Positions 21,001 through 44,400 of a stretch of 64,000 nucleotides of DNA are shown one piece after another. This stretch comes from Macrostomum lignano. Its lineage: Eukaryota. Under the pieces are notes generated by a model that was not told the origin of the DNA, did not search any database, and saw only the letters and a list, made by a program, of their open reading frames with translations. Location: positions 1 through 64,000 of the forward strand of contig NIVC01002566.1 in NCBI GenBank assembly GCA_002269645.1. The letters run 5' to 3'. A program made the position numbers and the translations under genes. Every line of letters begins with the position of its first letter. Within the stretch, counting starts at the first letter, position 1.

Positions 21001-24000
21001 TCCATCCTTTACACACAGACTAAAATAGCCTGACTGGTTGGGCTGCAAAGTCTGATTCTATTTTGACAGAGTTGCTTCAAAACTGACACTCTATGGTTTG
21101 TGTACCCAAAAAGTCCGCTTCATTTTTGACAACTCCGAATCAATATTGAACAGTTAACAATCAATTTTGACTAAGACAGTTTTTGAAATAGATTTTGACA
21201 ATTTTTACTAAGATTTCTCTCTTGAGGGGGGGGGGGGTACTTGCTATTTGGGAGAAGGGGTACTGGCTGCATGTATCTACGAGTACATGTATATAGAGTG
21301 TCAGTTTTGAAGCAACTCTGTCAAAATAGAATCAGACTTTGCAGCCCAACCAGTCAGGCTATTTTAGTCTGTGTGTAAAGGATGGAGAAAAATAAATTTT
21401 ATCAATACTTGTAGATCCAAAAAGCAAAGTCAGAATAAGCTGATTTTGCACAGCTCACTTCAGCCCCGTTCAGGCTTTCATTGGATTACTTTGTTACCGA
21501 ATTCTCCCAGGAGAAGTTGACTAAACGTGCATTGTCAAAATTGAACCAGAGTTTGTCAAAATTGAAGCTTGATCTGTCATTCTTATTTGATTCTGCGTGC
21601 AGGATTGCTGATCTGGCACGCCCAAGCGTGCAGAATTGATGTTGTCTATGGCAAATTATCCTTTAGGTCTAATGCATCTTACGTGCAGGATTGCACTTTA
21701 TTTTTAGACAACAAGAAAACAACGAGTGAAAATTGGTTAATATCATTCCTAGTTTTTCGCTTGCGATCAGATGCTACTCAAATACAAATTCAATGACGTT
21801 GGTGTCACCATTGGCTCTAATCTTCAAATTCTTCCGATTTTCCGGAATAACTCGCACACAGCGCACCGAGCCCGACGTAGGATCGTTGATAACGTCAACT
21901 GGGTCACTAGCCTCAGTGCCTACAACTTGAGGGTCGGCCGTAGTAGCCACCTCCACGGCAGCCGTTAGTTGATGGCTCATAGCACAAATCGCTTGCTCTC
22001 GTTTATTCCCTCGTCGAATGTAGCGCTCGACGGATGCACCTCGCTTGTGGCCAGTCACTTTAGCGATAGTTTCGACATTAAATCCAGCGTCGTGAAGTTC
22101 TGTGATTACAGTTGCACGCACACACTGCACACCATTGTCAGTCAGAAACTTCTCGAAACGACCGACGGAAGCCAATTCCTTTGCAATGGTTGATTGACAC
22201 TGATTCTCACGTTCAACTTGCTGAGCAAGGCTCTCCAGTTCATCCAGACTTGCATTCGACATCGGGTCAGTCGCTAGCAGCTTCTCTAAATCGGCGTCAG
22301 CAATTGCATCCAACATGGGCAGCAGCCATTCGTTCTCTCTTTCCCACTTGCTAGAAATGGCTGCAATTGCCACCTCTTCGGATGACAAACCGTCGACGGT
22401 TGCGTATCGCATGTCCATAAGCGGAGGAAGAATCGACGGGTTGATTAGAGAAACCATTGCTTTGTTTTTATAGTGGCAACTAGCTTTCAATTGTAATCTC
22501 CTTTCGTTACCCCCTCCCCTCACCATCTCCAGCGTGCAAGATTGATTTTGTCTATGGTTAAAATGTGGGGGCTTCGCCCCCACGCCCCCAGCGGGGGCTC
22601 TGCCCCCACACCCCCGCTAGCAGCGGGTAATGTCTATAGTAATATCAATTATAACCTCCTTTTTTGGGCAGAATGTAAAATGGAAGAATCAAATAAGAAT
22701 GAGATTCATGCACGCCAACTCGTGCGTCTATGGCAAAGAGCACTCGTGCGCTTCGCGCACTCGTGCCTTTGCCAATGACGCACTCGTTAGCGTTCAAGAA
22801 TCCTAACAATATTGATTGTAGATTTTGAGTGCCCGACCATAGAGTGTCAATATTGAAGAGGAGTTTGTCAGTTTCGAAGTTCTCCTTGTTCAAAATCGAG
22901 GGTAAAATGGTGTAAAGCCCATGGTACTAAAGCCCATGGTGCTAAAGCCCCTGGTGCTAAAGCCCCTGTTGCTAAAGCCTCTGGTGCTAAAGCCCCTGGT
23001 GCTAAAGCCCCTGGTGCTAAAGCCCCTGATGCTAAAGCCCCTGATGCTTAAGCCCCTGATGCTAAAGCCTCTGGTGCTAAAGCCCCTGGTACTAAAGCCC
23101 CTGGTGCTAAAGCCCCTGGTGCTAAAGCCCCTGGTGCTAAAGCCCCTGGTGCTTAAGCCCCTGATGCTAAAGCCCCTGATGCTAAAGCCCATGGTGCTAA
23201 AGCCCATGGTGCTAAAGCCCCTGATGCTTAAGCCCCTGGTACTAAAGCCCCTGGTGCTAAAGCCCCTGCTGCTAAAGCCCCTGGTGCTAAAGCCCCTGAT
23301 GCTAAAGCCCCTGATGCTAAAGCCCATGGTGCTAAAGCCCCTGCTGCTAAAGCCCCTGATGCTTAAGCCCCTGATGCTAACGCCCCTGGTGCTAAAGCCC
23401 CTGCTGCTAAAACCCCTGCTGCTAAAGCCCCTGATGCTAAAGCCCCTGGTGCTATAGCCCCTGCTGCTAACGCCCCTAGTGCTAAAGCCCCTGGTGCTAA
23501 AGCTCCTCGTGCTAAAGCCTACATGAGTACGTCACTGTAGGAGTAGCTTATCGCTGCATCCTAATTAACACAGCTCAAAATGGTAGCTACGCGCTAAAGT
23601 TTCTGATAGGCGACAGTTTTATTAGAAAGTCTTCCAGAATAACAGTTTTTTTCAATAAAAATGCTAACAATGTACCTAGCGCCCTTTCTATGATCATCTG
23701 CAAGACACTGCAACTAATCTAAAAAAGACATATTCATCGACGACACTTACTTGCAGCACATTTTGCTATTTTGCCCTACGGCAGGTTCGTACGGATTGTT
23801 TAAACTCGAGATTCTGCAACACAGTCGAGATTGTGTTTCCCCTGCCAGACCAGAGTCCGCTGTACAAGACCTCGCCAGACCTGTACGCTTTGTTGATGCT
23901 GCAAAAAAGCGGCAACAATGCTCACTAGAGGCCTGCCTCCACCGACACGGTCTGGGCTTCTGCGACGTCGGATTGTTGGACAGAGGAACTCTGGGCTTCG

Positions 24001-27000
24001 ATTCTTTTCACATCTGCATCAGGGGAATGAAAAATGTTCGCGACAGTGAAGATCGGGTGAGCGGAAGTTATGCTTTTTCAATTATTTAGCAGTTAAATTG
24101 CTTTTTATCTAGAGTCTTACGTTTTAAGTGCTTAAAAGAATTATAAAAAGAGCAAATGGCATAATACTACCATAGAGAAAATGTAAGGCTACATTCTGTA
24201 TCACGTGTTGGAAAAATCCGGCCGATAAAGCCTTTCCATCTGGCCTTTAAAACTTTTGTGTTCCTTACTACCAAGACCTTCTTAGTAATCAAGGAACAAT
24301 CACTTCTAGCTACTGCTAGGCAACCCAGTAATCAAATGAAGGTATTTATTACCTTGAGTCCTGACTAGTCGTACTCTTCCTGTGAGTTGATCTCGCAATA
24401 GGATTCAGTTAGATCAGTTGATCTGGCGCCTTACTTCTTGTTCTGGTCCGAGTCTTCTTTGTGCTCCTTGACTTCTTGCCGGCCGGTGTGGTATCTGTAG
24501 TTCGGACCAATAGGAAGCTTCGAATTAACTATGGGATCCCTGCGCCAATCTGCGGTTTCAATTAAGCCTTCTCCTTCTAGCAGTGCTTCAATGCACTCTA
24601 GGTATAGCTCCGGTAATCACTGATAGTCCTCTAAGATCCATCAGGGTAGCCTTCTGGAGACAACAACCAATGGAGTCTTAAAATAGACTCTAGAGTCTCA
24701 ACAGACTCAAACACAACAATAATAATAAGTCGACTCAAACAACGGGCGCAAATGAGTAAGGCTTACCGCAAGAACTCGACCGAGTCTCTGTAGGAAGTCT
24801 TCGTATTGCTTCCTCTTCGGAGCTTCTCCTTCTGGAGTCTTGTTGTTAGCTCCGGGTCGGCTTCGGACCACTTGTATTTATAGGCAAACGGACCCCTCGC
24901 GAGGTCGTCCATCACATTTTCGTAAATGTCAAAAGGTCGCGCTTTGGTGGCTGTCAAGCATGACAGGGTAGAAGGTTAAGCAACTGGTCTAGTGTAGCGC
25001 GCATGATTGGTTACCGTAGCTGGGTTAATTGGGGCTTTCTTTGATAGGTTCACCCGGTGCAGGCCGGATGATGAATCGCAGGTGGGGTTTAAACTTGACA
25101 ATTGTAGGTCACACGTGATTGGTCGGCTGCTAAAATAGCATGTTCGAATTTTCTTTCTTGTGATTGGTTGATTAAAATATATCTGTGATTCAGTACTTGT
25201 TATTATACATGCTACTTACTATACTACTGAATAAAACTTATAAGTAGTATTTTAACTGTTTTATGTCTTTTTTACGAGAGGTAGAAAACTCTACAAAACT
25301 TCACAGTAGCAACTCGGCCCGCTAAAGGTTTGTGTCGCTTTTAAGCTTTCTTCTCTCCCCGCTCTCTCTTTTTATCTCTCATCTCATCTATCTTGTTAAT
25401 CTCTATCTATTGAATTGTATTGTATTCTATCTATCTATTGATCTCTATCTATCTCTATCTCTTTCATTGAGTTGTATCTTTTACCTGACGTTTGAGCCAA
25501 GAAAGCTCGTCAAGCCCTGTCCAAGATATTACTTAAACACCGGTAGGGTTCAGAGTAGCCCCGAATCAGTGGAATCCTGGCGGAATCCTGCGTCTAAAGT
25601 ACGCCCTGTTTATGACCCACTACATGCCTGATAGCTAAAAACCAAGCCCGTTGTACACAACCCTGTACGAGTGTTGTGTTATCCTATGATAGTCATGGGT
25701 CAACAGGATGAACAGAGTTGCTTACATCCTCGCTACCTTGGTGTTGACTGTCGTCTTCTCGATTTTCAGCAATGCTATCCACCTCGAGAATGAACTAACT
25801 AGCAAACGACAACAATAACGGAGGTTTCAACATAGCTTATCTAAACAATATGAATTAGCTTTGTTAAAATCCTTGTTTTTAACATATTGCAGGCAATCAC
25901 TGCCGTGTTTCGGTACCTTGCCATGCTTCGAAAGCTTGGACCGCAAGAGTGGTTGTTCGAGGAAGCTCGCCTAGAAGGCCAAAAAGCCCTTGATGTCGGT
26001 CTAAACGACTGGGAATACTATCCATTTGTTCGCAGCAATATCTGCCTTCAGCGATATCCGATGCAGGACCTGCTGAGAGCGCATCGAGTGCCATGCGACT
26101 ACTCGCCAACAATAATATCCGAATTCTTGAATTTGCTGACTCCCGACAGATGCAAAGTGTACGTTTTCGAAGCTGGCGTCAACAAAAACTGTCCAAGTAA
26201 GTGCTTGAGTTAATACGGTACAGAAATATTTAGCTAAGTATTCAGACTTGAAGGGAACAGATGAATGAAACAGCATGTTTTTTACAAACTAGGAACCTTT
26301 AGCTTTTGTTAAAATCTTCATCTTTTTTAGATAAAAAGGTTAATATTGACACAGTTCACTCGTACAATGTATGTTGAGTGATCATGTCGATAATTTTGTG
26401 AAAGTGCACCAGGCTGCACTATTTTCAAGCACAAATATTTGAAAGTATAGTTAATGAGAAATCTAAGCGTCCACGTCCCCTCAAAAGGCTTCTTTCTAAA
26501 ATCATTCCTTATTATAGCGTAGACCACAGATACTATATAACTAGATAGGTCACTCCCTATCTCGCTGTGGGGACCAAAAATGATACTACTCTTAGGACGG
26601 TAGTGTAAATGCAAATTATAAGAAACATTCTTATCAGTGACTAAAACGAAATCGATCGGAAATGAAGTTTTCAACCATATGCACAATCTTCTACAGTGTA
26701 CATTCTTGACTCAAGGACTACTTAAGTAGAAGGACGCAAGACTCAGAATTGGTGAAAATTTCATTGATGGCCGATTTTTCAATGTATCTCCTGTGTACGC
26801 TATTGATCGTAAGATGCTTATTTTTGCGCAGAATAGGCAGCAACATATGCCCTTTCATTTAAGACATCAATAAGTTGAAAAATTCGGACTTGAAACACCT
26901 CAAAATTCTTGTCAGCAGTACAATCCTATATACTAAAAAATCATCTAAAATTGCTGATTTTATTGTCAAAATAAACAAGAAGAAAACGTCAAAACAGACG

Positions 27001-30000
27001 AAACTGCAAACTGGCAAGGTAGCAGAAACAGGAAGAAAGACGACCTAGCAGGCGACGACATCATCGGTGGCGTCCAATTCGTCGCCGAATTCTTAGTCGA
27101 GGGCGTCCAGATCCGCGGTTGACGCTCCAGGGCCGGCTTTTGTGATCTGACAACATTGAGCGGCGACGATGGCAGTGCCAGCTGCTGCTCGCGGGCGCGT
27201 TTGGCCACCGGCGGTGTCCGTGGTGACGACAATCGGGGTTGGAAGTCATCGTCGTCGTCGCCGAATAGTTCTCGTTTAATTCTGCTGCTGCTAATCGGCT
27301 GGCCCGGTGTCTATTCGTCACTGTCCGGGACCACGCTCGCAGTGATCATAACATCATTGTCGTCGTCGGCCGCCGCCGCCGGGCCAATAGAGCCGGGTCG
27401 CTGCGAGTCGGTCACTAGCAAAGATGCTATCTTCTGCTGCTGCTGCTTTTGGTGGTGCTGCTTCTGCCGCTCGGGCAATTCAGCAGCAGCTTCGGCAGCT
27501 TCAGCTTCGGCTGCTTCGGCAGCGGCAATCAGATCGTCAGCGTTAATCTCGTCGTCTTCGAAAAGATTGATGGCAGCCGCAGCATGCTCGCTGCAACCTC
27601 ACAGCTTAGCTGCTCCTCCAGAGCTGCCTGCCGCTCGGCTTCCTCACACGCCTTGATCAAGTCATCGACATCTTCGGTATCTTCGGCATCGTAGTTGTCC
27701 ATGTCGCACCAAATATTTAATTTTTTAATAGGAAAGTGCACTGAAAGAACTGAAACAGCAACAGCAGCGACTAAAGCGTTGTCTTGGTATCCTTTCTCCT
27801 ACTATATATATGACTGGGCACCGCTGTTAATTTTGTTGTCTATGGCTAAAAGACCCTTTTGCTTGACCAAGCAGAAGAAGAGAGAGCCATATCTATATAT
27901 ATATTTTTTAGGAAAAAGTGCTAGGCATCGCTGCGGCGCAGTGCTATTAATATGTTTTGTCTATGACACGAACTCGACAACTTGAATACTGCTTTACCAT
28001 GCACGCATGCAGAAAATGAATCTCTTCTAAACCTGCTTTATCATGCAGAGCCGCTTTACCAGAGCACACGTTTGCAAAATTGATTTTTTATTTTGGCTAT
28101 TTTTTACTACTAATGGCTGGTCCTAAGAGTAGTGTGAGAGTAAATTAACCGAATGACCTATCTAGTTATATAGTATCTGTGGCGTAGACCAACGATCATA
28201 TATACAGATATATCAAAGATCTATGGTGTAGACTTGTAAAACTTCGCAAAAGCGTCTTCTTATCCGAATTTTTTTGCTAACGTCCATCTGTATGTAGCTG
28301 TCTATGGCCAGTCCTGCCCACACTCCGGCGCGGTGCCGCACAGCGTCAAGAAGCTGGATCCCGACCTGCTGGCAGTCTGTAAAGCCGATTGGCCTTCACC
28401 AAGCATTGAATTCGACGCTGATCTGGGCTTTCCTCAGCCAACGCCTGTGGATTGCTTAGTAAGCTGGGTGCTTGTCTGAGGACTGAGGACTGATGACTGA
28501 GAACTTTTCGTCGATTAGTTAAAGCTATATAGATCACTTGTAGTATTTTAATCCTCCAACATGTTTTAGGCGGAGTCAGTGTCAATAAGTCAACAAGACG
28601 ACAGTTTGGCATTGTCGCGCATTGCTCGCCGTCATGACAAACTCCTAGCCTTGCCGTCATCTGACTGCTCATTCCACGTCATTGAGCTGACAAACGGTGT
28701 CCAAGCTATCCTGGCCAGTCGAAACAGTTTCGGAGGCCAGGAGAGTAACGAAAAATCGCTTGTGTGCGCCACCCTGGGCATTGGGAGACTACACGATCCG
28801 ACTGACTTTCGAGGCTTAGCAGAGCTGTGCCATCGCCTCACACTGGTTGGATCGAAATCGACGCCTCAAACATTCGATGGCTTGAACGACCTGCTGCTAG
28901 ACAATAGTTGTGAAGAGAATGTTGAATATGCCATGGGGGTACACGATGACCAATCGGTGTACAAGTTTACTGTTCCAGCGAGTCTAATTCCGGAAAGCCT
29001 GTTTCGCCTAGGCTGTGGATTGGTCAATCCCGAAATTAACAACGAAAGCGTCGAACGCGAGCTGCTGTCTGGTCAGTTCAGGCGCCAGATTCTAGCCCAG
29101 GACTGGTTGGAGCGCTGCTCGGGAAATCTCACTCATCCCTACAACCGAATGGCGAAAGGTGCCCAGAAAACGATTAGATCCTACACATCCGAGGAAATAA
29201 AAACTCGCTTGATTGCATTTTTCAATGAAAACTACTCTGCGAACTTGTTGAAGCTGGCTATAGTGGACAGCAGGTCTCTTGACGAGTTGGAGGTTAGTTA
29301 GCGAGCCGTATAAAATATCGATCCTATTGGAAGTAGGCACACTAATACTCGCAAGTTAATAACGAAGCCTTCAGATATGCGTGGTTTAATAACTTTGTAC
29401 TCATTGCAGAAACTGGTGGCAGCTCATTTTGGAAGCATGCGGAATTTGTCAATCAACCAGTTGAAGATTTCAACGCATCCGTACGAAGGAACATTGATAG
29501 GCGTAAAGGTAGGTGCTTCAGACTTTATGTGTGTATTTTTGTGTACGTTTAATAGCAGCAGACAAGGAGTATACGACCCGTAGACTCGCAAATTAGAATG
29601 TCACTTTAGAGAGCGCACTTCTTGTTCAGCTTGGTTCCCCGACCAGAAGTAGAACCCGAGGACGCTCTAACCTATGAGCCCCTGCCTAAAATTACACAAT
29701 AGCTTACATTGGTTCCCGACCACAAAAGTAGAACCCGAGGACGCTCTAACCTATGAACCCCTGCCTAAAATTACACAATACACTTAACTAATCTAGGTTC
29801 GCAGCAACTGTCTGAGTTTAGGTCGAAAACTTTACATGGTTTTCCCCTTGCCGGAGCAAACAAAACTGCACTTGACTTCGCCGGACATGCTCGTGAGCTA
29901 CTTGATCAACAACCGGTGCAAGGGGAGCATTAGCGACTGTCTCGAGCGGCGTCATTTAAGTACAAACGTGTTTGGACAACTGGTCAACAGAGGTTCTGTA

Positions 30001-33000
30001 GGCTTCGACTCCTACTGCGTGACTGTTTTCCACCAGAATAAAGAGTTGGAGATGGCAGAGAGTGAGAACAAGGTGTGTACGAATAGCGATTTACATGCGT
30101 TTTATTGTTGCGTATATCACACGCTGTTCTTTCTAGAGAAGTCGTGCGTCGGACGCATTCATGTCACTCACGACTTGAAGGTCGGGGTTTGATTCCCGAT
30201 CATACTGGAACAATTTTTGTCTTTTAGCAAGACACTTAACTCTGCATTGTTTCAAGTTCACCCAGCTGTAAAATGGGTGCCAGCATTAGGAGGAGCAATT
30301 AGGGGTGGTGTGTTGCGATCCCAAAGTTCTTGGACTGAACAGCCGTACGCAGCCTTCGGATGCGCCGCCCAATAGCTTCGGCTGAGCTGTCGGTTGCACA
30401 TCTAGCCCAATTAGGGAAGGTTTAATGAATTATTATGTTTTTATCCTCTTTAAGAAGAATCTGACTGTAAAAAAGTTTTCACAATGATCGACAACCTTCA
30501 ATAAACTTCAATAAAAATCAGACGTACGCGTCTATTGGTTAAAATACCTTTTAAAAAATTTCACTATCGCAAGCTTTTAAGCTCATATTTTACAGACTCA
30601 GTAAAATACCACACTTATCTTCAGATAATCACAATAGTATTTCGCTATCTCGCAATGCTGCGCCAAATTGGTCCACTGGAGTGGCTCTACAACACTTTCC
30701 GCGTAGAAAGACGCAAGGGTCAGACATTTGACGACGAAAATTCTTCTACTGGGCCTCGTTGGAAGCTGAACCCGTTGCAGTACTACTGCGACCAGCTGCT
30801 AGAGTGCCACATGCAGCGCTACCCTCTCGAGAGCTTGTTCACTGCTCGGTACGCGTTGCCTGAATACTCGCCTCGGGCCATTACTGACTTCCTGGAATTT
30901 TTGAAACCCGATAATTGCAAGGTGTTCGTTTCGGGCTTGGGCACAGACGAGTCTCATATGTGCACCTTTCTGTGTAAGTTGTCCTTTAATCTACAAAATG
31001 GTTACTAATTAAGTATCGGATAATTTAAAATCACTTATGACGTGATCTTCTTCGTTAGATTACTGATTATTCGATCCTTTCACCCGCAGCTCCTGATGGC
31101 AAGCTCTGCTGCGAGCCGGATGGCCCAAATTTCTGCAGTATGGAAAAGCTCAAACCGGAACTGATTGCCACCTGCTCAGCTGCTTGGCCTTCTTCATCGT
31201 GCGAGTTCGATACCGAGCTGAAGCTGCCAAAACAGAATCTGTTTTTGTGCTCCGATTTTAGTCTGAGGCCCGACGAGACAACTGATCAGGTCGGTATAGA
31301 TTCCTTGCGGAGCGGTGATGCGGTGGTCCAGACCTGTGTTAGGGTAGGTTAGGTTAGGGTAGTCGGATAGCTATAATTTTAAGAGAAGCTTTTCGTGCTG
31401 CAGCTAATCAAGTCGACCGTTGAATCGCAGACAGAGTGGAAGCACACGCTCACACATGGTGTACAATGCCTATGACTTCATGGCTGAATATGAATTGCAA
31501 GAATTGTACGGAGGAGTAGTTGCGTTATTGTGTCGACCTTTTTTTGATTTCAGCAACCACCAGGACTGCGGCTGCTACGATTCGAAGCCGGGCCGCACAC
31601 ACCAGCCGCTCGCTTTTGGTTCCAGCAGGATAACAGGCTCCAGACTCCGATTGTCTTCATCTCAGTCGATTTGGTGACTTCGCCTGAGCCGCTTGTGACC
31701 GACTGCGCCTCGTCCGTCATGCTGGATATTTTTGTCGTGCTCCTAGTCGACCAGCTCAACAGCCTTGAAAGCCAAGCCAAGCAGGTTGATCTACGTTTAA
31801 AAGTGTCGCGCAGCAAACAGGGCATTCAGGTGTGCTGCAGCGGCTACAGGCAGCCCCTGCCAAGTCTTGTGGCTGCCGCTCTGAGTCGGATTTTTGAGCT
31901 GAAGATTACGGAACATGCATTTCGTAAGGTAAGCTGTGCACAGTGTCTAACTAGAATTTTCCCGCCGACGAATATTTCCTGACGAGTTTGGCCTTGGGGA
32001 TTCTTCTTAACTGCTCTGAACATATTTTTATAAGAGGCCAGCTGTTGAGGGGGCGCCAGCTACAGAGGGGACGTCAGCTACAGAGGGGACGCCAGCTACA
32101 GAGGGGACGCCAGCTACAGAGGGGACGCCAGCTACATTGGGATGCATTAATTGCCTACATGGATCATCGGCTCAGCAAATATAAATTAATGGGTTATCAA
32201 TCTCCTCATTGTTTCAGGCTCGACGGAAAATATCTGCCCTGGAGGCGCAGAAAACGCACAAAACGGACTTGTGCAAGTCGCAGCTTGCTATGCTACTAAA
32301 TAGCGCCTGCTCTTGGCACTGGTCGTATCAGGATAAAAGAGTCGCTATTAACGGTATGTTTGCTAATATCTAAATATTCAATACAAAAATTCCAGACGAA
32401 CTCTCTTCTCTACAAACCTTCACTTCAGAAACAACTCTGGAGAACTTCATGATATTTGTCCAGCGATTCAGCAGTCAGATTCAGCTATCGTCGCAACCGC
32501 AACGTCTGGTCAGCGAGGACGAGGACGAAGAGGACAAACGAACTGACGCGGCTGTTGCCGTCATGAGCCTTTGGTCACGAATCTCCCTAGCCGAGGACGA
32601 AGAAGTCGTAGAGGAGAGCTCCGCGCTGCAGCAGACACTTCAGGAGGAGCAAGACCAGCAGCAGAAGCAGCAGATTCCGCGCCAACTGTTTGCCGAGATT
32701 CTCGTTTATGGCAACGCTACAGCTAAAGATGCTGAAGCAGCCAGTCAAATCATTTTGAACGCGCTGCCATCACCGACTCAGCGTACCACTGAGACAACAT
32801 TTGAAGCAGTGAGGCGTCGAGTGTATCTACTCCCCAGCGGCAGCCATCACGTGCTCCAGCTGACAATATCTGCTAATTATCAGAGGAAATCAGGGTGCGC
32901 TGTAGTACTTCAGGTGCCAAAACCGGTGCCAACTGCCGACACAAATATGGGCTTTGAAGACGCGATTAGACAAGACTGCTTGTTTTATCTGCTAATCGAG

Positions 33001-34184
33001 GTTTTGCAATGCCGCGGCGAGATGATCAATGACCCGTTGGATCGAGCTATAAAGATACTAATACAGAGAAATTATCACGCCTATGTTGTTACTTTTGACG
33101 TTGTGGATTCACAGCACCCGACAAAGGTAGGCCGATATGTGAGAGTAGTGAATGAACAATGTCACTGAACCGAAAGGGTAGGCTGATGTGTGAGAGTAGT
33201 GAATGAACAATGTCACTGAACCGAAAGGGTAGGCCGATGTGTGAGAGTAGTGAATGAACAATGTCACTGAACCGAAAGGGTAGGCCGATGTGTGAGAGTA
33301 GTGAATGAACAATGTCACTGAACCGAAAGGGTAGGCCGATGTGTGAGAGTAGTGAATGAACAATGTCACTGAACCGAAAGGGTAGGCCGATGTGTGAGAG
33401 TAGTAAATGAACAATGTCACTGAACCGAAAGGGTAGGCCGATGTGTGAGAGTAGTGAATGAACAATGTCACTGGATCGAATCAGCTGCTTGTTTCCTATC
33501 GCTCTTTTTTTCCAGATTGAAGAACAAGTGGAAAATTATATCGAAAAAATTGGAGATTACATTTCCTCTCTGTCAGAGGAGTCATTCCTATACTGCTTAT
33601 CAAGCATGGAGAAGTCGATGCGCAAAGAAATTCCTACTACTGTCCAGGAGCAGCACGATTCCCATTGGCGCAGCATCACTCACGGTGTACTGCGCTTCGA
33701 CCGGGACGCAAATTTGGCCAAGTGTTTAGACGCAGTGGTTGGAGGCATCAAGAAGGATTGTCTGCTTGAACTATGGCGGGTAAGTAGCAAAGTACCAGTT
33801 TTTTTACCAGCGTTTATCAGATTCAACTTGAACTCAAGTTGGAGCTTATATAATTAGTCTTGTATAATATATACCGTTCGCGCCGCTTCCAGTCCTGCTT
33901 AAAGCGGGGATCTCCGAACCGGCGCAAGCTGTGCATCCATCGAATCTCCAGGGCGGCTTTCCCCGACGGCATCAGCGAGGCTGACTACGCTGATTACCCG
34001 GTGAGTCCTGAAGCCATACGCACTTGTTGACTCTTGTAGCGTTGGATGCGTTCTCCTTAATTAATTCTCTAAAAAAATCTATTTCCAGGGAACCATCATA
34101 CGTAACAGAAATCTTTTCAAGCAAAGCCTGCTGCTAAGTCCCTTGCCATCGGTGCAGAATTTGCGTCCGAATTCTGATGTCTAA
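18002..34184 (+). CDS. Gene A: insulysin/IDE-like M16A pseudo-peptidase with a duplicated N-half (N1-N2-C), ~1,700 aa, 17 exons; one frameshift in exon 4
   Basis: Exons: 18002-18607, 19900-20196, 20407-20505, 23785-24056 (272 nt, frameshift at an A-run ~23905), 25893-26196, 28298-28458, 28570-29292, 29410-29508, 29797-30072, 30625-30973, 31090-31289, 31554-31928, 32218-32353, 32396-33126, 33516-33779, 33893-34000, 34089-34184. All junctions are GT-AG with consistent phases. IDE landmarks: ELPNG/ELTNG, GxGRLHxP, HPxNR, YSAxLL, HPY, VFRYLAMLRKLGPQEWLF, RYP, FWFQQD, VYGNA, RRKLCIH, FKQSL. Confidence 0.85.
18644..18882 (+). mobile_element. tRNA-headed SINE (A box tggttagagc, B box ggttcgattc) with a Meta-SINE-like central core
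   Basis: The head, tgtgtccttgaccaagacactt core and 3' tail are shared with six other copies in the window. Confidence 0.85.
19567..19790 (-). mobile_element. SINE copy, same family
   Basis: Reverse complement of the 18644 element. Confidence 0.8.
20704..22912. mobile_element. Foldback/MITE-type DNA element with 391-bp TIRs and a TA target duplication
   Basis: Left arm 20704-21094. Right arm 21293-21579 plus 22809-22912 (391 bp in total, split by an insertion). Ends CACCATTTTACCC…GGGTAAAATGGTG are flanked by TA inside a 15-bp minisatellite. Confidence 0.9.
21580..22808 (-). mobile_element. Internally deleted Crypton-like tyrosine recombinase element
   Basis: It interrupts the right TIR of the foldback element. 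ORF 22583-21774 has QCVRATVITELHDAGF…IAKVTGHKRGASVERY (YR C-terminal RHRY-type residues) fused directly to an N-terminal STIAKELASVGRFEKFL segment. attcttatttgattc (21579) is inverted at 22687, and there is a gtgcgc-ttc-gcgcac hairpin near the end. Confidence 0.75.
22913..23520. repeat. 15-bp minisatellite (gctaaagcccctggt), ~40 copies, with 2 further units at 20675-20703
   Basis: Read directly; the VLKPL and GFSTR ORFs are by-products. Confidence 0.95.
24206..25832 (-). mobile_element. Probable solo LTR (~1.6 kb)
   Basis: Bounded by TGTTG…CAACA. On the minus strand there is TATAAATA at 24875-24882 and AATAAA at 24345-24350, ~140 nt before the end. No matching TSD was seen. Confidence 0.5.
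26990..27706 (-). pseudogene. Decayed acidic/Ala/Gln-rich coding-like fragment in intron 5 of gene A
   Basis: MDNYDAEDTEDVDDLIKACEEAE… continues across frameshifts and stops (FEDDEINADDLIAAAEAAE…, ELFGDDDDFQP). It is GC-rich relative to its flanks, with no recognisable domain. Confidence 0.4.
29627..29781. repeat. ~80-bp tandem duplication in an intron
   Basis: aagtagaacccgaggacgctctaacctatga(g/a)cccctgcctaaaattacacaata occurs twice. Confidence 0.8.
30146..30416 (+). mobile_element. SINE copy, same family
   Basis: cacgacttgaaggtcgggg…cacccagctgtaaaatgggtgccagc…gctgagctgtcggttgcacatc. Confidence 0.85.
32046..32135. repeat. 18-bp minisatellite (gaggggacgccagctaca), ~5 copies
   Basis: Read directly. 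Confidence 0.85.
33122..33472. repeat. 51-bp tandem repeat, ~7 copies, spanning the exon 14 splice donor of gene A
   Basis: Unit aaagggtaggccgatgtgtgagagtagtgaatgaacaatgtcactgaaccg. The first copy contains the real donor AAG|gtaggc at 33126/33127. Confidence 0.9.
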
Positions 34185-35437
34185 GCGAGACGCCATCGAG
34201 TTTCTTGGAATTTTGAATTTGCAGCAACAAATAAACTGGACTCAGTTCAACCTCAAAAAAATATCTGTAGTTATACACTCTAATATTTACCGATGCAAGC
34301 AGCCTAACATGCACTAACAACTTTGTCAATGTTTTATATGAGAATGGTTTTGCTCAAGAAAGCTCTGGTTTTCGGTTTCCCTTGGTGTACTTACTTGTGC
34401 AGAAGACTAGCAAAGACCAATTATCAGATGGTAAAAGAATAAAATCTATTTGTTCATTTTTTACATAAAATACGCTCGTAGCCTTCGTTCACGGTGTAAA
34501 ATTATTTTGACGATTTTTTTTACAAATTTTGCTTTTTAAATCATTTTGTAACACAAAGATCCGTTAGAAGCTCCCCAGAAACGCCAGATCGTCAGTTAAA
34601 AAACTGAATTTAAGTATTCATGCTCATAACTAGCATCTGCAAAGTTATAGATACACAGATACTAGCATCGTAGATAGGACAGTACACCACATGTAGATGT
34701 AGAAGTGTTTGGTCTTACTCTAACGATCACCAAAGGAAAGGTTGTTAAATTTTTTGTTCTATAATGTTGCCGATCCTCGTGGACATAAAGAGATGAATAA
34801 ACTCCTATGTCTGCGCCAACAGGTCAACTCAACAGTGTCCAATGCTCTTTGTCGTATGGGTATTAAACAAGCCAAGCAAAAACTAAAATAATAATGAAGC
34901 CAAACAGTAGCCTGTAGCTGTAGTACTCTTCTCTTGACTTAACTGAATCAACTGCTGTAGAGGACGCAATGTGAAGATGAGAGCGAAAGGCGAAAGGTTG
35001 GCTTTCCTCGATTATTTTGTTGCTCCCTGTTTAGTGCTGTGAAGGCAGCAGGTAACAATTAAGGTAATTTGAGCGTAAATGCAAGGTTTAAATTTATTTT
35101 ATTCTGAATACGTCATAAACTGCTGTTGAGCATGCAGCTCTAGTTCAAGAAAAAATCGGAGAGAAGTTTTCATTAGTCGCGTTATATCCTATCAAAACTG
35201 TACAAAGGTCTAGTTTAATACTAGGTCAGTTTGGTGATAGATGTTTAATAAATTCTGTTGAAGCTAAAAACCATAACTCAACATTCTCGATGTCTCCTAA
35301 CCAACAAACATCTACTTGTGGTCCGAAGGGACAGCAATACACTATTTTTCCACCTTGATATGATTGTCTATGGGCATAACTTGAAAAAACCGCATAGTCT
35401 TTCAATTCTTGCATAGCTTCAATTCTCAGAGCTCAAA

Positions 35438-38400
35438 ATGCAACAGAGCCTAAAGCTTCCACAGCAGCAGTCGCCATCCCAGTCCAAGCAGCCTGAATCG
35501 GTAAATCAGCGACCAAGTGTCACAATGTCCATAAAAGTTCGCGACAACAATGTACCCTTAGTAAAAGGAATCGAAGCTTATAAGCACACAAAACGACGAT
35601 GCCTGGAGCTGTCGAACGGTGCCAGTGTTCTTCTTATTAGCTGGTCAAACTTGGAGCAGATTCAGGGCTTCTTCGATCCCTACAGCGTGTTTCTTTGCGT
35701 GAACCTCAACATTGGCCGGCTTCACGACCCACCCGATTGTGTAGGCCTTGCCGAGTTGTGCCAACGACTGACGCTCTGCGGCTCCAAAAAATATCCGAAC
35801 GACGAGCAGGCTGGTAAGTCAGTCAGTCCGTCTGAATCTGCTTGGCTAATTTTGCGGTGCGCTGTGGCTTTTTAAAATGGAACAGCATTTCAGCTACTAG
35901 CTGAAAGACCTAGTAGGGACGATTGACAATTCACCTGCACACCAAAATCTCGTTAACCGCTTGGTGATCAGGATGCTAGCACACCCCGGTACAGTATACG
36001 ATCGCTACTCGTACGACGTACATGTTGCTCTGGTGCATCTATAACTGGTTAAAATGCCACGACGATTGATGGTTCAAGTTATTGAATCACCCTAATCGCA
36101 GTCTAATCGCAGTCCTCCAAGGACTGGGAGGTAGCCACACACCCTCAATAACCCCAGCTAATGCTGGGTACCCATTTTACAGCTGGGTGAACTGAAGCAA
36201 TGTAGAGTTAAGTGTCTTGCTCATTACTCAAGGACACAAATTGTTCTAGTGGGATCTGGAATCGAACCCCCGGACCTTTCATTAGGGAGTCCAATGTTCT
36301 AACCACTAGGCTGCAATCCAGTTAACATTTAGTAATGTTAATAAACATTGTTTAGTATAATATCCGTGTTTGTTTTGTACATTGTTCTGAAAAAAGTTTT
36401 GGTGTATAAGAGATCCCTAGGGAAATCAAAATTTGGTTCTTACTCAAGAAAAAATGCGAGTTGCTGACAAAACTGCGCCTAATTTGCAGGTCTGCTCACG
36501 AAAGTTCAGAGAGAAAGCAGCTCATACTCAGAAGAGATCACAATCGGGCAGCCGCAACAAGAAAGCCATAGCAACTCAATATTGTCCGAATCATTCGATT
36601 TCGACCCGCTCGCTCGAATTGAGGTCACCGAGGATCAGACAATTTACACTTTTACCCTGGAAACCAACTATCAGTTGGAGATGTTTCTGGACCATCTCTG
36701 CGCCGGGTTGCAGTGTCCGCTGTTTAACAAGACGGCAGTGGAGCGGCAGGTGCAAATCTGGCAGGCAGTCTCTAAGACGAATGCGCCCTCCCTAATAGAC
36801 CAGTTAGAGCACTGCTCGGGTGACGCCAAGCATCCCTACAACCGGCTGCACCGTCAAAGTGGCCGAACTGTTGATAAATTATCTACCGATGAGCTAATTA
36901 ACCAACTGAAAGAATTTCACTCGAAAAACTATTCCGCTAATCTGTTGCGATTGGTGCTGTCGTATGCGAAGACACTGGACGAAATGGAGGTTCGTAACAG
37001 TCGTTAATATGTGGTTGTAAAGATTACCATGGCTATAAATAACTTATGCACCAAATACTCGAATTGACAGGCAATGGTGCTGGAGTCTCTGGGTGGAATG
37101 CAAAACTTATCGCTTCCACGTATTCGCTTTCCTCGTCACCCGTACGATGGTACGGAAATGGCAGTAAAGGTAAAATTGTGCCGTAAGCCTGAAGCCAATT
37201 CTTTCAAAGTATTTCAATTTTTATTGCGCCAAGAGACACAAAAAAGTTTATAAAAATAAAATGGCAACACATTAAAATTCAGCCACAAGCAAAGCTAGCG
37301 TTTTAAGATAGGCGACTCATCATTAACCACTTATGTGGCCATAGAAACTAATGTGAAAATTTAGCTACTCGCGTCAGCGCAAAGACAAAGCGTCCAGTGT
37401 TTACTATCGAAATGTCTATAAATCAACAGTACTTTGTACGTTTGCAGAAGGTCTTAATTGTTTATTATTACACTAATTACAATATTTCAGATATACTTGG
37501 CCTTATGACACATATTTAATTTTGCTAATTTTTACGTTTTCCCAGACATCGGAAGTCGTTTCCTTTTACGAGTATTTCATTTGAACCCAAAAACAGATGC
37601 AATGAAAAATTAAATCAACAACATTAACCGAGTAATTATTCGAATAGAAAAGTTTTAATAGTAGTACCAATAGTCGTTCAGAGTGAATAATATTACTATT
37701 AAAAGCCTAATAATTAGCGAAGTTAAATCCGTGGGCTTTATTATATAATCTACGTGGTACTACTCACAAACATAATATATTAACGGTTTGATAGTACAAT
37801 GGAGTAAAAACTGTTTTACTGCCGTGTACAGCTGATTTATAAGAAAATCTAGTATAGCGTCTTTCTACGTGTTCTTCATTCGTCTGTGCCTCCATGGCTA
37901 CATGTACGCCACCACCAACAAATTCTACGAGAAAAGGTGATAAGACCTTGAAAACCTATCAACTCATTCTGTAGGTTCGCATCAAAGGTAAATCTCTCGG
38001 TGGAATTTACATTGTGTTCGCACTGCCAGACCAGTCTACTAAGTATCTGTCGTCGCCAGATTTATTCTTAACCTTTCTGATGCACGTTGACGAGCGCGGC
38101 GGGTTGCAAGACTGTCTGCAGAGATTCGGACTGGGCTATTGTCAGTGCCGACTGTTGCCTAGCGGCAATCTAGGCTTTGATTCGTACTGCATCGCCATCA
38201 AAGGCATGTGTAAAGTTCGCGATGCGGAGAACAGAGTGAGTAGATCTATATGTGCTCAGATTATATAAAGATTGGTCAAAATGCATATTAAATAGTCTCG
38301 CTGTAGAACGGAGAGGTGAACTTAGGTACGCGGAGTGGGGCTCAAAGTAGAGCTCGAATCACAGTGGAAATCTTACCAGACCAGTTCGGGACACTCGGCA

Positions 38401-41400
38401 GGGTTTCATGGTAGGAAGTTTATCAGACACATCACGAACTGGCTGGGACACTTACGAACAACTATGCGCTATCGTGAAAGGGGTTGTCTTGCGATTCAGA
38501 GCCATGAGGCTAATCCCCAAGGTACAGAATGTGTACATAACCTGACAAATAAAATATCAGGGCCGATGTACACCCTGTGTGAGAGCGTTTATGAGTTCCC
38601 AGTGCCTGCTTACAGTATTGGTACACTTGTATGGGATCAGGAGTCTGCAGAGTGGGCTGAATTGCTAAACGGCTGGTTGTAGGACGATGTAGCCAAACGC
38701 GTTGCACCATAATTAATGAATAATTAACAATAAATATATGCACTTGTTTCTGAGCTGTGTAACGAATCAATACTAGACTTCCACGTATTATACATTTTCA
38801 TGTACACCTGTTATATTTAGCGCTCCATTTGCCAACACGCAGGCAATTACAGCAGTGTTCCGCTACCTGGCGTTACTGCGCGCCGTTGGTATCAACGAGC
38901 TTCAACGCAGAGAAATCTGTAAAACGCACGAATTGACTTATAATCCATTTAGTTTAACCGAGTTCGGTCCGCCGCCCGAGTGCCTGCCGCGGCGCATGCA
39001 GCGATATCCGCTCAGAGACCTGCTAGTAGCTCGTTTTAAAATGTCAAACACCGGGTCCGGCGTGCTCGTGGAATTTCTTAGTAGCTTATCACCGGATCGC
39101 TGCAAGGTTTTTGTTTCCGATACCAATGCCAGCAATAGGGAAGGTGCAGCCAGTCAGTGTAAGTGTGCATTTTTACCCAGTGAACCGACACACTTTAACA
39201 GCGTAATATTTTGCCATTTTTGCCTCTTTGAAACGTTCCCCGGGAAGTGACAAAAACGATTTGAAAAACGTTGGCCATATACAATACTTCAGTTGATTGA
39301 TTAGATGTTGTCAGCACTCATTTTAGCGTCGCAGGCACTCATTTTGGCGCCGCGGACAATCATTTTGGCGCCGCGGGCAATCATTTTAGTGCCGCAGGCA
39401 CTCATTTTGGCGCCGCAGGCACTCATTTTAGCGCCGCGGGCACTCATTTTGGCGCCGCGGGCACTCATTTTGGCGCCGCGGGCAATCATTTGGCGCCGCG
39501 GGCAATCATTTTGGCGCCGCGGGCAATCATTTTGGCGCCGCGGGCAATCTTTTTGGCGCCGCGGGCAATCATTTTGGCGCCGCGGGCAATCATTTTGGCG
39601 CCGCGGGCAATCATTTTGGCGCCCCAGGCTCTAATTTAAGCACCATGCAGCAAAATTTCCAAAATGGGTCACAAGGTATGGTGGGGGGGGGGGCAAAGCA
39701 TTGGCATGTCCCCCCCCAAATCTTTTACTGGCGCCCCTGTCCCCCCGTTGGCGACGCCCCTGCCCTTCATCTCACCCCACCCCCAACTAGAGATTAAAAG
39801 CTTTGTAATACATCGGTAGGTATTGACGCAAAAGTAGAGTACTTTATAATAAATATCAATATATTGTAAATAGTCGTAAACAAAGTAAACAAAGACATCG
39901 TCATAAATATATAGATGATGTCAAGACACAAAAATGGAGTCAGAACACAGATTTTGGGGGACGCAAAGAGGTATATTTACGTGGGCATAAATAATAAAGA
40001 AAAAAGGGTAAAAGTTAAAAGCAACGAAGAATACAATCTGCAAAAACTTTTTTACTTTTTTTACAAAGGGTCTAAGTGTATTCGGCCAAGTACTATTAGG
40101 TTAGCTTCTTGCCACATAACTAAGTTTAGGTTTTCACGAGCGTGAATGACAGAATCATAAGGCCAGTTGAAGTGTCAGTTATCGATAGTATCATTTTTTT
40201 TCACAGCCCCAGACAGCAGCAAGCCGGGAGAGCGCGTCAAGTTTACAGTGGAGAAAATTCCATCGGAGCTCCTGTCGGCTTGGGCCGCCAGCTGGCCGTC
40301 GAAGTCGGAGTTCGATGCCGACTTTATTCTGACACCGATCGGTCCCGATCCGACGCTGCCTCGTCCGCATCGATTTTTGCCCTGGAAAATTCCCTCGGAG
40401 GTGAGTGCGAGTTTAGCAATGAAAAATGTCTTGCTGGAAATTTTTATGCTGCCATAAATAAAATCAATAGACACATAGATTAGCAGAAGGGTTGTGTTCA
40501 TCCTAACGCAGCGCCTTCGGCGACATCGTCTCACACCCAAGTCTGCCCATTTCGCTGACTCCTGGGCAGATACAAGCGTGCAAACACTCGTACACACGCT
40601 CACACAGGGTTTAAATCGGCTCTAACTTTCAAATCGTCAGGCATGTAGACTCTCTGGGCCCTAAGTTAATGCGAGTCGCATTAAAACCTCCCCAGCCAAT
40701 TTTCGTGTGCACAATCCCTTATTTAATGTGGCGTTCGGGAATGGGACGTGTTTACACTCTGCTCTCATTTATAATTACGTGTATACTATGATATCTTAAG
40801 TAAGATGCCTCTTTAAAGTCGCTCATAATAATCCGTTTCTCTACCCTACAGTTCTCTACTATTCGATCAGAGTCTTCAACGTTGATAAAATCTCGTTGCA
40901 ACGATCTCGGGGCACCGGTGTCGCTCGAATACGCTACGACAAGGTGCAACTGCTTGGAGTTAACGAACGGCGCCCAAGCCATCCTGCTGCACAGCGAAAG
41001 TCTTGAAAATAAATCATTCGTCTGCGTCAGCCTTGGCGTCGGTCGGTTGCACGACCCACCGGACTGTGCGGGACTGGCTCAGCTGTGCCAGCGCCTGACT
41101 CTGCTTGAGTCGAAGAAGTATCCAAACATAACCGAGTGCTTGCACAATCTTCTCTATATAAACAGCTATCAAGGGTCGCCGTACTACGCGACGAGCGTTT
41201 CCGACGACCAGACAACTTACCGGTTCGAAATCGACAATTCATTCTTACATGAAAGTCTAGACCGACTTAGTGCGGGTATCCTGAGCCCTGAATTTACCGA
41301 GTCTAGTCTTACCCGTGAGCAACATCAGAACTTCTACAGTTGCAAGATTTCTGCCTTGGATTGCCTACAGCGCAGCTCGGGAAATTCAACTCATCCGATC

Positions 41401-44400
41401 AATCACCTGATACAGGGCAGTAATAAGACCGTGGGTTTGCTTGAGTTCAAAGAGCTGCACAAGCATCTAACTAGCTTTCATTCGCGGTACTACAGCGCTA
41501 ATCTGCTGCGTGTAGCAGTGTCTAGCAGCCACAGCATGGAAGACATGGAGGCAAGAGATCATTTTTATGTCACTTTTTTAATTGGGTCAGGGGTGCTAAA
41601 CAAACAGTTTAATGTTTCAACAGGCAATGGTTCTCACAGCATTCGGTGGAATGCCGAATCTGTCAGTATCGCCGCTGTCCTGCTATACTCACCCGTTCGA
41701 GGGCTCTAAGTTGGGCGTCAAGGTAAGCTTTATCTCTCTCATGGTCTCAATTGCCAGGACCACTAGTAATTGTGTCGTATCAGAATTTAGCACTTACCGT
41801 CTATGAAAAAATCTAATTGAAGGCTAAATTTCGCTCAAAATTTGCGATCGTCGTAATATCGATCGTAGGAGGTAAGAAATTGTCGAATAAGTGATTGAAG
41901 ACGATAGAACGTAACTGCTACGTCCTGATGCAAACTAAGCTTCTAGTGATCATTCAAGATTTTTACAGGGCTTATAAATAATAACTTTGCATTACCTAAC
42001 TTGTCCAGATTCGAGGAAAGTCATTAAGCCTCGGCGGAGCGCTGCACATCGTGTTTCCTCTGCACGACCAGACGGAGTTGTACAAAACCTCACCCGATCT
42101 GTACGTTAGTTACTTTCTCAACAGTGACTGCGGCGGCAGTTTAAACGCCTGTCAGGATCAGCTCAATATTGCAACAGTATCCGCCGGGATGCAGAACTCC
42201 GGTTCGCTAGGATTCGATTCGTATTGTGTGACAGTGTTATTATCGAATACTACTGATCTAAGTAAAGCTGATCTGATTAAAACTGAGAACAATGTGAGTA
42301 CTTTATAAACAGAGCAGGATTCTTTACAAAAAACAAGTTAGTCGGGCCTTTGGACACTGCCGAAAATAAAGGTGGCAGTCTCTCTAGCCATGACAGATGA
42401 AGGCAGGGCAGGTAAAGGCCGGTTCACATTACCACTAGTTGCTATGCTGGTCAAAGATTGCCCAAACCAACAATGCACAGTCGATTCAGGTTCATTTAAA
42501 AAATAAATTTGAGCAATATTTTGTCCCCAGAGTTACTGACGTTACTGCGAATTGGTCTTCTTATAATATCGGAACTTTGAATTTCTTACGTTCTTCGGAC
42601 GTCCAATACTTGAGCTTATAACTTATTTTGCTTTTTAGATGTGTAGATAGACACTTTCAACAATTTTCACCTATCAAACCATTTTAAAATCTGTAATAAA
42701 TACTCGTGCTATTGCTAGCTATATTTTATTGATGTTAACGTGGACGAATCTCAACATTTTTAGGCAATAACAGCCGTATTCCGGTACCTAACAATGCTGC
42801 GACAGCTGGAGCCTCGGGAGTGTCTGTTCAACATGGTCCGTCTTGCTCAAAGAAGGCTGTTCAATTTCGACCGCGAAGGCGAGTGCATGGCGCCGGGCAG
42901 TGAAAAACTCGACCCGTTGCAGCGGTTCTGCGATGAGTCGCTGCAGGTGCATTTGCAACGGTATCCAGTTAAGGAGCTGCTTACTGCTAGAAGTGGCTCC
43001 AAGCTTGAATACTCGGCACAGGATATCGCGGCATTCCTTCGCTTGCTTGTTCCAACCAACTGCAAGATTTTCGTCTCCGATTTTGGAGCAGATGCCTATC
43101 ACGAGTGCTCGTTGTTAAGTGAGAATTATTTCTGTTTCTTATGGTGTATTTTTACCGCAGCACCGATCTGCTCATCTTTCCTGGTGTGATAAACGCAAGG
43201 GCGTTGCCAGAATTCTTCTTTGGGAGGCTGAGTCGTCTGGGGGCTTTAGCACAAAGGGCTTTAGCACCAGGGGCTTTAGCACTAGGGGCGCCAGCACCAG
43301 GGGCGCCAGCACCAGGGGCACCAGCACCAGGGGCGCCAGCACCAGGGGCGCCAGCACCAGGGGCGCCAGCACCAGGGGCGCCAGCACCAGGGGCGCCAGC
43401 ACCAGGGGCGCCAGCACCAGGGGCGCCAGCACCAGGGGCGCCAGCACCAGGGGCGCCAGCACCAGGGGCGCCAGCACCAGGGGCGCCAGCACCAGGGGCG
43501 CCAGCAACAGGGGCGCCAGCAACAGGGGCACCAGCACCAGGGGCTTTAGCACCAGGGGCTTTAGCACCAGGGCGCCAGTACCAGGGGCGCCAGCACCAGG
43601 GGCGCCAGTACCAGGGGCGCCAGCACCAGGGGCGCCAGCACCAGTGTGTAAAGTACATTGCCATAAAAAATCCGTCGTATTTTCGTCCGTCACTCCCCAG
43701 CACCTGGCGGCAGTCTCTGCTGCAAGCCGAAGAAGGCAAACGAGCTGCACACGCTGGAAAAGCTGCCATCGGATCTTCTCACCGCCTGCTCAGCCAGCTG
43801 GCCAACTGCCTCCATCATGGCGGACACTTTGATCAAGCCGCCAAGGGAAAACTTGTTTATCAGTGCCGATTTTCAACTTAAATCGAGAGAGAAAAAATTT
43901 GAGGTATTCAATAATCTTTATTTATGTTTTACTATGCTTCTGCAAGGGAAACTAGCAAGTAGGTAGTGGTTTGTCGTGCAACCAGGGCCAGATCCTGATC
44001 CAGATCCTACCAGACAAAATCAAGTAGAAATCTCTATGTATTAGTTCAGTACATGTACCTTGATTATGTGCTATTTGATATCTTTGCACTCAAAGCAGTC
44101 TTGTTTAGATCATAGTTTCTAAGAAACCAAAGAGACGGCAGTCCTTGCTCCTTTCCACGTCTAATTTTAGTCGTCCGGTCCTCAGCAGCTGCTGATCAAA
44201 CAGTTTCCCAACGGCACCAGCATTTCTGGTGCTCGACTCTGGTTCTGTCAGGACGGCCTGCAGTCGTTCAAAAGTCCTCATTGTTTTATCGCAATTGATC
44301 TGCTGACGTCGCCTGGATCGATTGTCACAGATTGCAGGTCTTCCATCCATCTGGACTATCTGGTGCAGCTGATTGAACTTCACATTCAGGAGTTAAAGGA

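Follow-up and report, generated by a model that had tools for sequence, protein, structure and literature searches.

How does a protein of a family normally built from two halves come to carry three, and did it do so before or after its gene was copied? The question is raised by a stretch of 64,000 nucleotides (nt) of Macrostomum lignano DNA (NCBI GenBank assembly GCA_002269645.1, contig NIVC01002566.1, positions 1 to 64,000; hereafter the window), in which two intron-rich genes, A (18002 to about 34180) and B (35438 to about 51335), lie adjacent on the plus strand between 18002 and ~51335. Each codes for three halves of an M16A protein resembling insulin-degrading enzyme (IDE): two N-terminal modules, N1 and N2, and one C half. 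A phase-0 intron joins the last N1 exon to the first N2 exon, so the three blocks form one reading frame. An earlier analysis (the original prediction) had proposed that an ancestral N-N-C gene arose first and was then duplicated in tandem, with selection acting on two specialised N modules. We find that the divergence of N1 from N2 is clearly older than the A/B gene duplication, and apparently also older than the radiation of the whole array to which both genes belong. It is highly probable that the region comprises two full members, A and B, and the tail of a third gene, Z, from a tandem array of divergent, dead IDE relatives in which N1, N2 and C were joined once, before the array diverged.

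BLAST matches between paralogues, together with open frames and splice sites, served to rebuild the exons of A and B one by one. N1 comprises six exons and N2 five, with domain 1 of N2 in a single exon, and the C half follows. A hidden Markov model built from the four N modules finds exactly these four in the window and none beyond, and the paralogy is far above chance (BLASTP between exon translations down to E = 1e-51). Two further loci, L001 and L002, give the order of the array as P5(-), P4(+), Z, A, B. The proteins of A, B and Z have about 1600-1650 amino acids (aa) and six M16 domains, in contrast to the usual two-half architecture; each matches the N-module profile twice and then runs into a C half. 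The canonical plan of one N and one C half (four domains, ~1000 aa) is kept by P4 and P5 and not by these three.

Maximum-likelihood (ML) trees were computed on a MAFFT alignment of 488 columns, holding eight N modules and ten IDE-type outgroups, with self-written code (BLOSUM62-derived reversible matrix, four gamma categories, numerically checked analytic gradients, nearest-neighbour interchange search). Rooting used IDE-type sequences only, no nardilysin having been identified among the outgroups. The eight-module tree is ((A_N1,Z_N1),B_N1,((A_N2,B_N2),(Z_N2,(P4,P5)))). The predicted arrangement, (A-N1,B-N1),(A-N2,B-N2), stands in its N2 part, where A_N2 and B_N2 group in 97% of 62 ML bootstrap replicates, but not in its N1 part: A_N1 pairs with B_N1 in 29% of the replicates and with Z_N1 in 53%. 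The topology that had been named as refuting it, N1 with N2 inside each gene, is excluded for the whole module. Each such pair appears in 0-2% of the replicates and, with six outgroups, the tree is 30.6 log-likelihood (lnL) units worse (standard error, SE, 14.5; resampling of estimated log-likelihoods, RELL, 0.016). With the same outgroups, a tree that makes N1 sister to the N2 of Z, A and B and leaves P4 and P5 outside is likewise rejected (18.1 lnL, SE 6.7, RELL 0.001), and one with an N1 clade and an N2-type clade is not (4.0 lnL, SE 3.1).

Quartets of modules were compared as well. Over all columns the A/B quartet favours N1N1|N2N2 (6.9 lnL, RELL 0.86), as does A/Z (RELL 0.83), and B/Z leans within-gene (1.9 lnL, RELL 0.68). 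Exons e2-e5 of A/B, taken alone, favour N1N1|N2N2 by 15.4 lnL (RELL 0.99). The C-half tree, rooted with the C halves of IDE, is ((A,B),(Z,P4,P5)) and agrees with the N2 tree rooted by N1; a root between Z/A/B and P4/P5 is 10.6 lnL worse (RELL 0.0007). Neighbour joining on ML distances resolved only A_N2+B_N2 (75.5%) and P4+P5 (80%), and strict parsimony on the four window modules was uninformative, with 15, 12 and 10 sites for the three splits. We place the N1/N2 split before the A/B duplication because of the ML bootstrap, the topology tests, the A/B quartet, the shared insertions and the common place of the junction. The exons are the following, with e1-e5 numbering those of a module.

18002-18607, plus strand: A_N1 exon e1a, ATG at 18002; first part of M16 domain 1, with ELCLR in place of HxxEH
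19900-20196, plus strand: A_N1 exon e1b
20407-20505, plus strand: A_N1 99-nt exon, phase 0/0
23785-24056, plus strand: A_N1 exon e3, 272 nt with a 1-nt frameshift; GLGFC...VRDSEDR motif
23903-23908, plus strand: A6 homopolymer, the frameshift site; gene A as found in L001 has A7 here and stays in frame
25893-26196, plus strand: A_N1 exon e4, AITAVFRYL...QRYP...CKVYV; phase-1 donor
28298-28458, plus strand: A_N1 exon e5, last of N1; phase-0 donor
28459-28569, plus strand: A_N1/A_N2 junction intron, 111 nt, phase 0; proteins P0002, P0156 and P0160 read across it
28570-29292, plus strand: A_N2 exon e1, the whole of domain 1 in one exon; ELCHR
29410-29508, plus strand: A_N2 99-nt exon, phase 0/0
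29797-30072, plus strand: A_N2 exon e3
30625-30973, plus strand: A_N2 exon e4, with the KLNPLQ insert
31090-31289, plus strand: A_N2 exon e5, LCCEP; LPKQNLF linker
35438-35813, plus strand: B_N1 exon e1a, ATG at 35438; ELCQR; identical to the N-terminus of P0001
36490-36989, plus strand: B_N1 exon e1b
37071-37169, plus strand: B_N1 99-nt exon, phase 0/0
37975-38235, plus strand: B_N1 exon e3, GLGYC...VRDAENR
38843-39158, plus strand: B_N1 exon e4
40207-40400, plus strand: B_N1 exon e5, last of N1; phase-0 donor
40401-40851, plus strand: B_N1/B_N2 junction intron, 451 nt, phase 0; proteins P0001, P0151 and P0152 read across it
40852-41550, plus strand: B_N2 exon e1, QLCQR; GC donor (GAG|GCAAGA)
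41624-41722, plus strand: B_N2 99-nt exon, phase 0/0
42009-42293, plus strand: B_N2 exon e3
42764-43118, plus strand: B_N2 exon e4, with the KLDPLQ insert
43701-43903, plus strand: B_N2 exon e5, LCCKP; PPRENLF linker; its end is also the end of the span given by the original prediction

All four modules have the 99-nt exon, flanked each time by an AG acceptor and a GT donor and in phase 0/0, and the phases of the downstream introns are 0, 1 and 0 in every case, in agreement with what had been reported earlier. N1 and N2 thus have the exon-intron layout (99-nt exon, phases 0, 0, 1, 0) and the in-frame join by which a duplicated exon block is recognised. The conserved motifs are likewise in place: the N1 motif common to A and B reads HGLGFCDVGLLDRGTLGFDSFHICIRGMKNVRDSEDR in A_N1 and FGLGYCQCRLLPSGNLGFDSYCIAIKGMCKVRDAENR in B_N1, and the N2 modules carry LSLG..L..VFPL..QT.L..TSPD..VSY..N..C.GS, GFDSYCVTV, KL[ND]PLQ..CD..L..H.QRYP and LCC[EK]P. 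The LGFDS part of the N1 motif does occur in N1 but is not specific to it, since B_N2 carries it too, and the excess identity of A_N1 to B_N1 is confined to exon e3 (46% vs 34-37%, n = 87, statistically weak). The span originally assigned to the duplication, 23785-43903, holds modules of both genes but begins at the fourth exon of A_N1, a module that starts at 18002; the 99-nt exon of A_N1 therefore falls outside it.

The junction between N1 and N2 lies at the same place, in a phase-0 intron, in A and B, and at the same aligned place in Z. All three N1 modules stop just past an LP.P motif and all three N2 modules open with a former N-terminal leader ([IV]..R.D...), which makes the junction homologous in Z, A and B. 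The exons of Z were placed one by one on L001 from its full-length model (P0164, 1602 aa, N1-N2-C), and their boundaries match those of A and B save for a 117-nt exon in Z_N1 instead of the 99-nt one. All five N2-type modules share an insertion of 8-13 residues before QRYP and a longer segment after GFDSY, and A_N2, B_N2, P4 and P5 have the LCC.P insertion in common; in the MAFFT alignment these insertions are absent from the N1 modules and from the IDE outgroups.

Two peculiarities of splicing were also seen. Domain 1 of every N1 is split by an additional intron, whose position differs between genes (A 18608-19899, B 35814-36489, Z 8607-8921 of L001), and no N2 module has it. The first intron of B_N2 has a GC donor (41551-41556), where the other three modules have GT.

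Sequence profiles identify the proteins as M16A homologues. Single exons match PF00675 (Peptidase_M16; E = 1.3e-12 and 6.4e-6) and, just under the curated cut-off, PF16187 (Peptidase_M16_M; E = 6.6e-7), and the closest solved structure by sequence is insulin-degrading enzyme (E = 4.6e-22). The M16 domains follow the IDE-like block order, and the modules were aligned with ten IDE-like proteins. The zinc-binding HxxEH is replaced in all eight modules (ELCLR, ELCHR, ELCQR, QLCQR, QLCNE, RLCQR, ELCAE and ELLAG); the outgroups have HF[CL]EH at this position. The segment of the third zinc ligand (NAVDSEHEKN in IDE) is 3-6 residues shorter and devoid of the acidic pair in every module but Z_N1, which keeps a full-length segment, LSLDRESRK, with one Glu near the ligand column. 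Replacement of HxxEH together with shortening of the third-ligand segment argues that the proteins are catalytically dead M16A homologues and, judged by these residues, the modules of A, B, Z, P4 and P5 are putative pseudo-peptidases. By eye, with no dedicated alignment, the LRTKEQLGY block of IDE (the R/Y pair of domain 4) has no obvious counterpart in the C half of A or of B.

Three observations speak for purifying selection on N1 and N2 alike. B_N1, A_N2 and B_N2 stay open over about 550-580 codons at 35-44% mutual identity, as does A_N1 save for a one-base slip, and 37 columns are invariant in eight of eight modules. Between copies of the same gene, the ratio of non-synonymous to synonymous rates (dN/dS) is 0.20 for A_N1 (7 synonymous and 5 non-synonymous differences; binomial p ~0.01 vs neutrality) and 0.07 for A_N2, values that rest on 5-26 differences per gene and are indicative only; B and Z have too few changes to interpret, and between A and B themselves the synonymous sites are saturated. 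N1 evolves about 1.5 times faster than N2 (quartet branch lengths ~0.88 vs ~0.58). Selection on both halves, as originally proposed, is plausible because the frames are kept open at about 37% identity and the A_N1 ratio is about 0.2, although A_N1 of the window is itself frameshifted. We infer that purifying selection keeps both N modules. The companion proposal that N1 and N2 have specialised finds no footing at the residue level once Z, P4 and P5 are considered: across three N1 and five N2-type modules there are zero fixed N1-vs-N2 differences and just three module-specific invariant positions, and Z agrees with A and B at 12 of 43 N1-specific and 16 of 76 N2-specific sites. Most of the module-specific conservation claimed earlier is that of A and B as sister genes; the genuine module-specific features are the N2-type insertions.

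The frameshift in A_N1 lies in exon 23785-24056, whose N-terminal part reads in frame 0 and whose GLGFC part reads in frame 2. The frame is broken because the run at 23903-23908 has six A, as compared with seven in L001 (about 23979) of the same assembly; the intact proteins P0159-P0161 read LQKKRQQCS at this site. A 45-nt mini-intron that would rescue the frame was considered and rejected, as it has no frame-restoring GT/AG pair and would drop conserved residues. The NCBI model of A (1272 aa) starts after the frameshift, and that of B (1357 aa) at a Met in the 99-nt exon.

Several observations weigh against a single, early joining of N1, N2 and C. The N1 trio is recovered in 26% of the ML bootstrap replicates; once outgroups are added the N1 modules fall as a basal grade, the N1-clade tree being just 4 lnL worse; exon e1 (domain 1) of the A/B quartet weakly prefers the within-gene split (A_N1,A_N2)|(B_N1,B_N2) (2.8 lnL, RELL 0.70); distances are saturated, at 1.2-2.5 substitutions per site within the family and ~4 to the outgroups, and the matrix is home-made. 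Moreover, A_N1 of the window is frameshifted and the NCBI models of the contig begin inside N1, so that complete translation of N1 is documented only for some copies, and the scaffold function suggested below is pure inference. The exon e1 signal, the leaning of the B/Z quartet and 31 identities found only between B_N1 and B_N2 would fit genes that each duplicated their own N half independently after the A/B split. Such a history is extremely improbable, given the 30.6 lnL and 0-2% bootstrap of the whole-module within-gene tree and its rejection by exons e2-e5 (15.4 lnL, RELL 0.012 for that split); the same insertions and the same junction would, in addition, have to arise separately in three genes. 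The exon e1 signal may instead reflect an old conversion between N1 and N2. The frameshift and the internal starts of the NCBI open reading frames (ORFs), along with dN/dS of 0.35-0.89 between B copies (from very few changes), speak for N1 and N2-C being separate genes, or for N1 being an untranslated or decaying leader, with N-N-C an artefact of gene modelling. We consider this improbable. The junction is in frame with good splice sites in A and B and recurs at the same aligned place in Z, and every public model of A, B and Z crosses it, even those that start inside N1; B_N1, Z_N1 and the other copies of A_N1 are open over ~550-580 codons despite ~63% divergence between paralogues, and N1 keeps the fold motifs, including the 37 invariant columns.

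The source of N1 is a separate matter. The ancestral N-N-C gene of the original prediction holds as to the order of events, the N1/N2 split preceding the A/B duplication, but an internal duplication and the fusion of a neighbour's N half are indistinguishable. The copies left by an internal duplication would be each other's closest relatives, and here they are not: the N modules of P4 and P5 fall with N2 and leave N1 outside, so that N1 must either have been lost later or have come by fusion. It is possible, if on the unlikely side, that N1 is an older N1-type front half fused onto an N2-type N-C gene, once, before the A/B split; tentatively, this would depart from the best explanation solely in the origin of N1. 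A conceivable route, to be held with the same reserve, is an unequal crossover or deletion between adjacent N-C paralogues that removed the upstream C half and the spacer, and a dense tandem array makes such events easy. In favour of a fusion, the N modules of P4 and P5, and not any N1, are the nearer relatives of the N2-type modules of Z, A and B and have insertions in common with them, and the tree expected from a duplication inside the Z/A/B ancestor is the one rejected at 18.1 lnL (SE 6.7, RELL 0.001). The data nevertheless also fit descent from an ancestral N-N-C gene, N1 having been lost later in P4 and P5. Because the C-half and N2 trees put Z with P4 and P5, a single fusion would not suffice unless N1 had also been lost or passed from one neighbour to another, and an exhaustive HMMER search found no free-standing N-C gene of N1 type.

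Under the preferred reading, that of one early joining in a tandem array of dead IDE relatives, N1 would be a copy of the exon block e1-e5, joined by a phase-0 intron to the first coding exon of an N2-C unit whose former N-terminal leader would now be read through as an internal linker. The joining would have happened once, ahead of the divergence of the array genes. A and B would be the youngest sister pair of the array, and P4 and P5, with an N2-type front half, would have lost N1 or never received it. N2-C would form an IDE-like chamber and N1 an extra pairing surface, giving a non-catalytic clamshell scaffold that binds peptides or proteins; such a role would follow from the kind of fold and from the missing zinc ligands.

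The public record holds the same genes. An exhaustive HMMER search with a first-exon profile (an alignment of single-exon translations) returned as its top hits P0001 (1650 aa, gene B), P0002 (1653 aa, gene A), P0006 (1230 aa, gene Z), P0004 (921 aa, P4) and P0005 (924 aa, P5), all Macrostomum lignano proteins. Ordinary IDE-like proteins follow at about 100 bits, and above this generic IDE level the family is seen only in Macrostomum (library of 1.84 billion representative proteins). Gene models PAA56842, PAA56843 and PAA56844 of a 161-kb contig match the window, and another B locus has a full-length B model, PAA53923.1. A word-indexed protein search with exon 1 of B_N2 gave no match, and literature searches found nothing for Macrostomum with IDE or for the transcript cluster names. 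P5 begins directly with its sole N module: the 10 kb upstream of it are free of N1 exons, as is the stretch between its start and a P4 remnant in L002. That remnant lies in positions 1-6700 of L002, where P5 stands head-to-head with P4; this P4 copy, annotated as a product of 244 aa, has lost e2-e4 and the greater part of e1.

The remaining coding features of the window are the C halves and the end of gene Z.

31554-34180, plus strand: C half of A; first exon c1 = 31554-31928, boundaries checked for c1 only
32221-32337, 32374-33129, 33513-33779, 33881-34003 and a last exon at ~34083-34180, plus strand: later C-half exons of A, approximate
44171-51335, plus strand: C half of B; c1 = 44171-44557; long introns filled with minisatellites
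46245-46376, 48847-49416, 49875-50144, 51031-51138 and a last exon at ~51240-51335, plus strand: later C-half exons of B, approximate
15160-16970, plus strand: gene Z, 3' end only; last C-half exons ~15436-15678, 16275-16574, 16689-16802 and 16877-16969

N1, N2 and the first C exons of Z are absent from the window, and no N-module match occurs upstream of the Z tail. That the N modules of Z might be hidden in 4700-15000 was considered and ruled out, as they are absent there. In 4700-16970, repeats and unrelated ORFs take the place of the missing Z exons, which are present in L001 and L002. Z may be truly truncated here, or the assembly may be at fault; the NCBI model of Z is flagged partial.

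Repeats are abundant around and within the genes. A 181-bp satellite fills positions 1-4677 (about 25.7 copies, 90% match), and minisatellites with periods of 15-51 nt pack the introns of A and B (22908-23519, 33118-33480, 39314-39623, 43263-43644, 44920-45865, 46656-48432 and 49501-49688); a 19-mer array among them has 94 copies, and a 51-mer array begins right at the end of an A C-half exon. A short interspersed repeat recurs at ~18650-18900, 19550-19800, 30200-30400 and 57030-57300, its translations matching each other in self-BLAST. The long A_N1 intron holds, on the minus strand at 21774-22583, a 269-aa ORF with a weak match to the C-terminal part of Phage_integrase (E = 0.005, below cut-off), which may be the remnant of a Crypton- or DIRS-like tyrosine recombinase. 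Two adjacent long ORFs on the minus strand (8352-10312; 447 and 191 aa) have no Pfam match and look transposon-derived by eye. Downstream of B, a single-exon ORF of 662 aa (52604-54592, plus strand), also with no Pfam match, is fused to B in model P0154 (2104 aa). Rfam and tRNA scans of the window were empty.

Comparison with described M16 proteins sets the family apart. The Macrostomum proteins share with the IDE/pitrilysin subfamily (MEROPS M16A) the domain families PF00675 and PF16187, the closest solved structure and the block order through domains 1-2, the LP..N.F linker and the C half, and P4 and P5 are of canonical length (about 920-1050 aa). Unlike IDE, their modules have no HxxEH, Z, A and B have three halves, and a long branch of ~4 substitutions per site separates them from IDE. 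M16 proteins are described as two-half clamshells, with alpha-MPP and the bc1 core proteins as inactive members (PMC11266112, PMC12731061), and term searches of these two reviews turned up no six-domain M16 form. As in alpha-MPP and the cytochrome bc1 core proteins (M16B), the zinc motif has been lost from an M16 fold that serves, according to those reviews (PMC11266112, PMC12731061), as the binding or scaffolding half of a clamshell. Those, however, are two-domain M16B subunits with a partner, active in MPP, whereas the Macrostomum proteins are M16A with an extra half, dead over the whole polypeptide, and have no known active partner. An over-length IDE-like model of the ant Dinoponera quadriceps (XP_014469183.1, P0003, 1835 aa) also matches the N-module profile twice. 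It was ruled out as a second N-N-C case, since it consists of two complete N-C units in series (N-C-N-C), and is probably a predictor's fusion of two tandem genes.

As uncharacterised predictions the sequences were in the public record already, and the inference on their evolution is routine and concerns fairly ordinary gene-family evolution, so that its value is moderate. The locus is a compact example of an internal duplication dated by paralogue trees, indels and intron phases. It is a rather doubtful proposal that Macrostomum has a family of its own of fully dead IDE-like proteins, some with a six-domain plan seen in no described M16 protein, in which N1 would give an asymmetric or chain-forming clamshell for capture rather than cleavage. 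The locus represents a single-chain M16A subfamily in which catalysis was lost, tandem expansion followed and a third half was gained in three members; it raises the questions of what new use a dead chamber for peptide binding is put to and how halves assemble when their number is odd.

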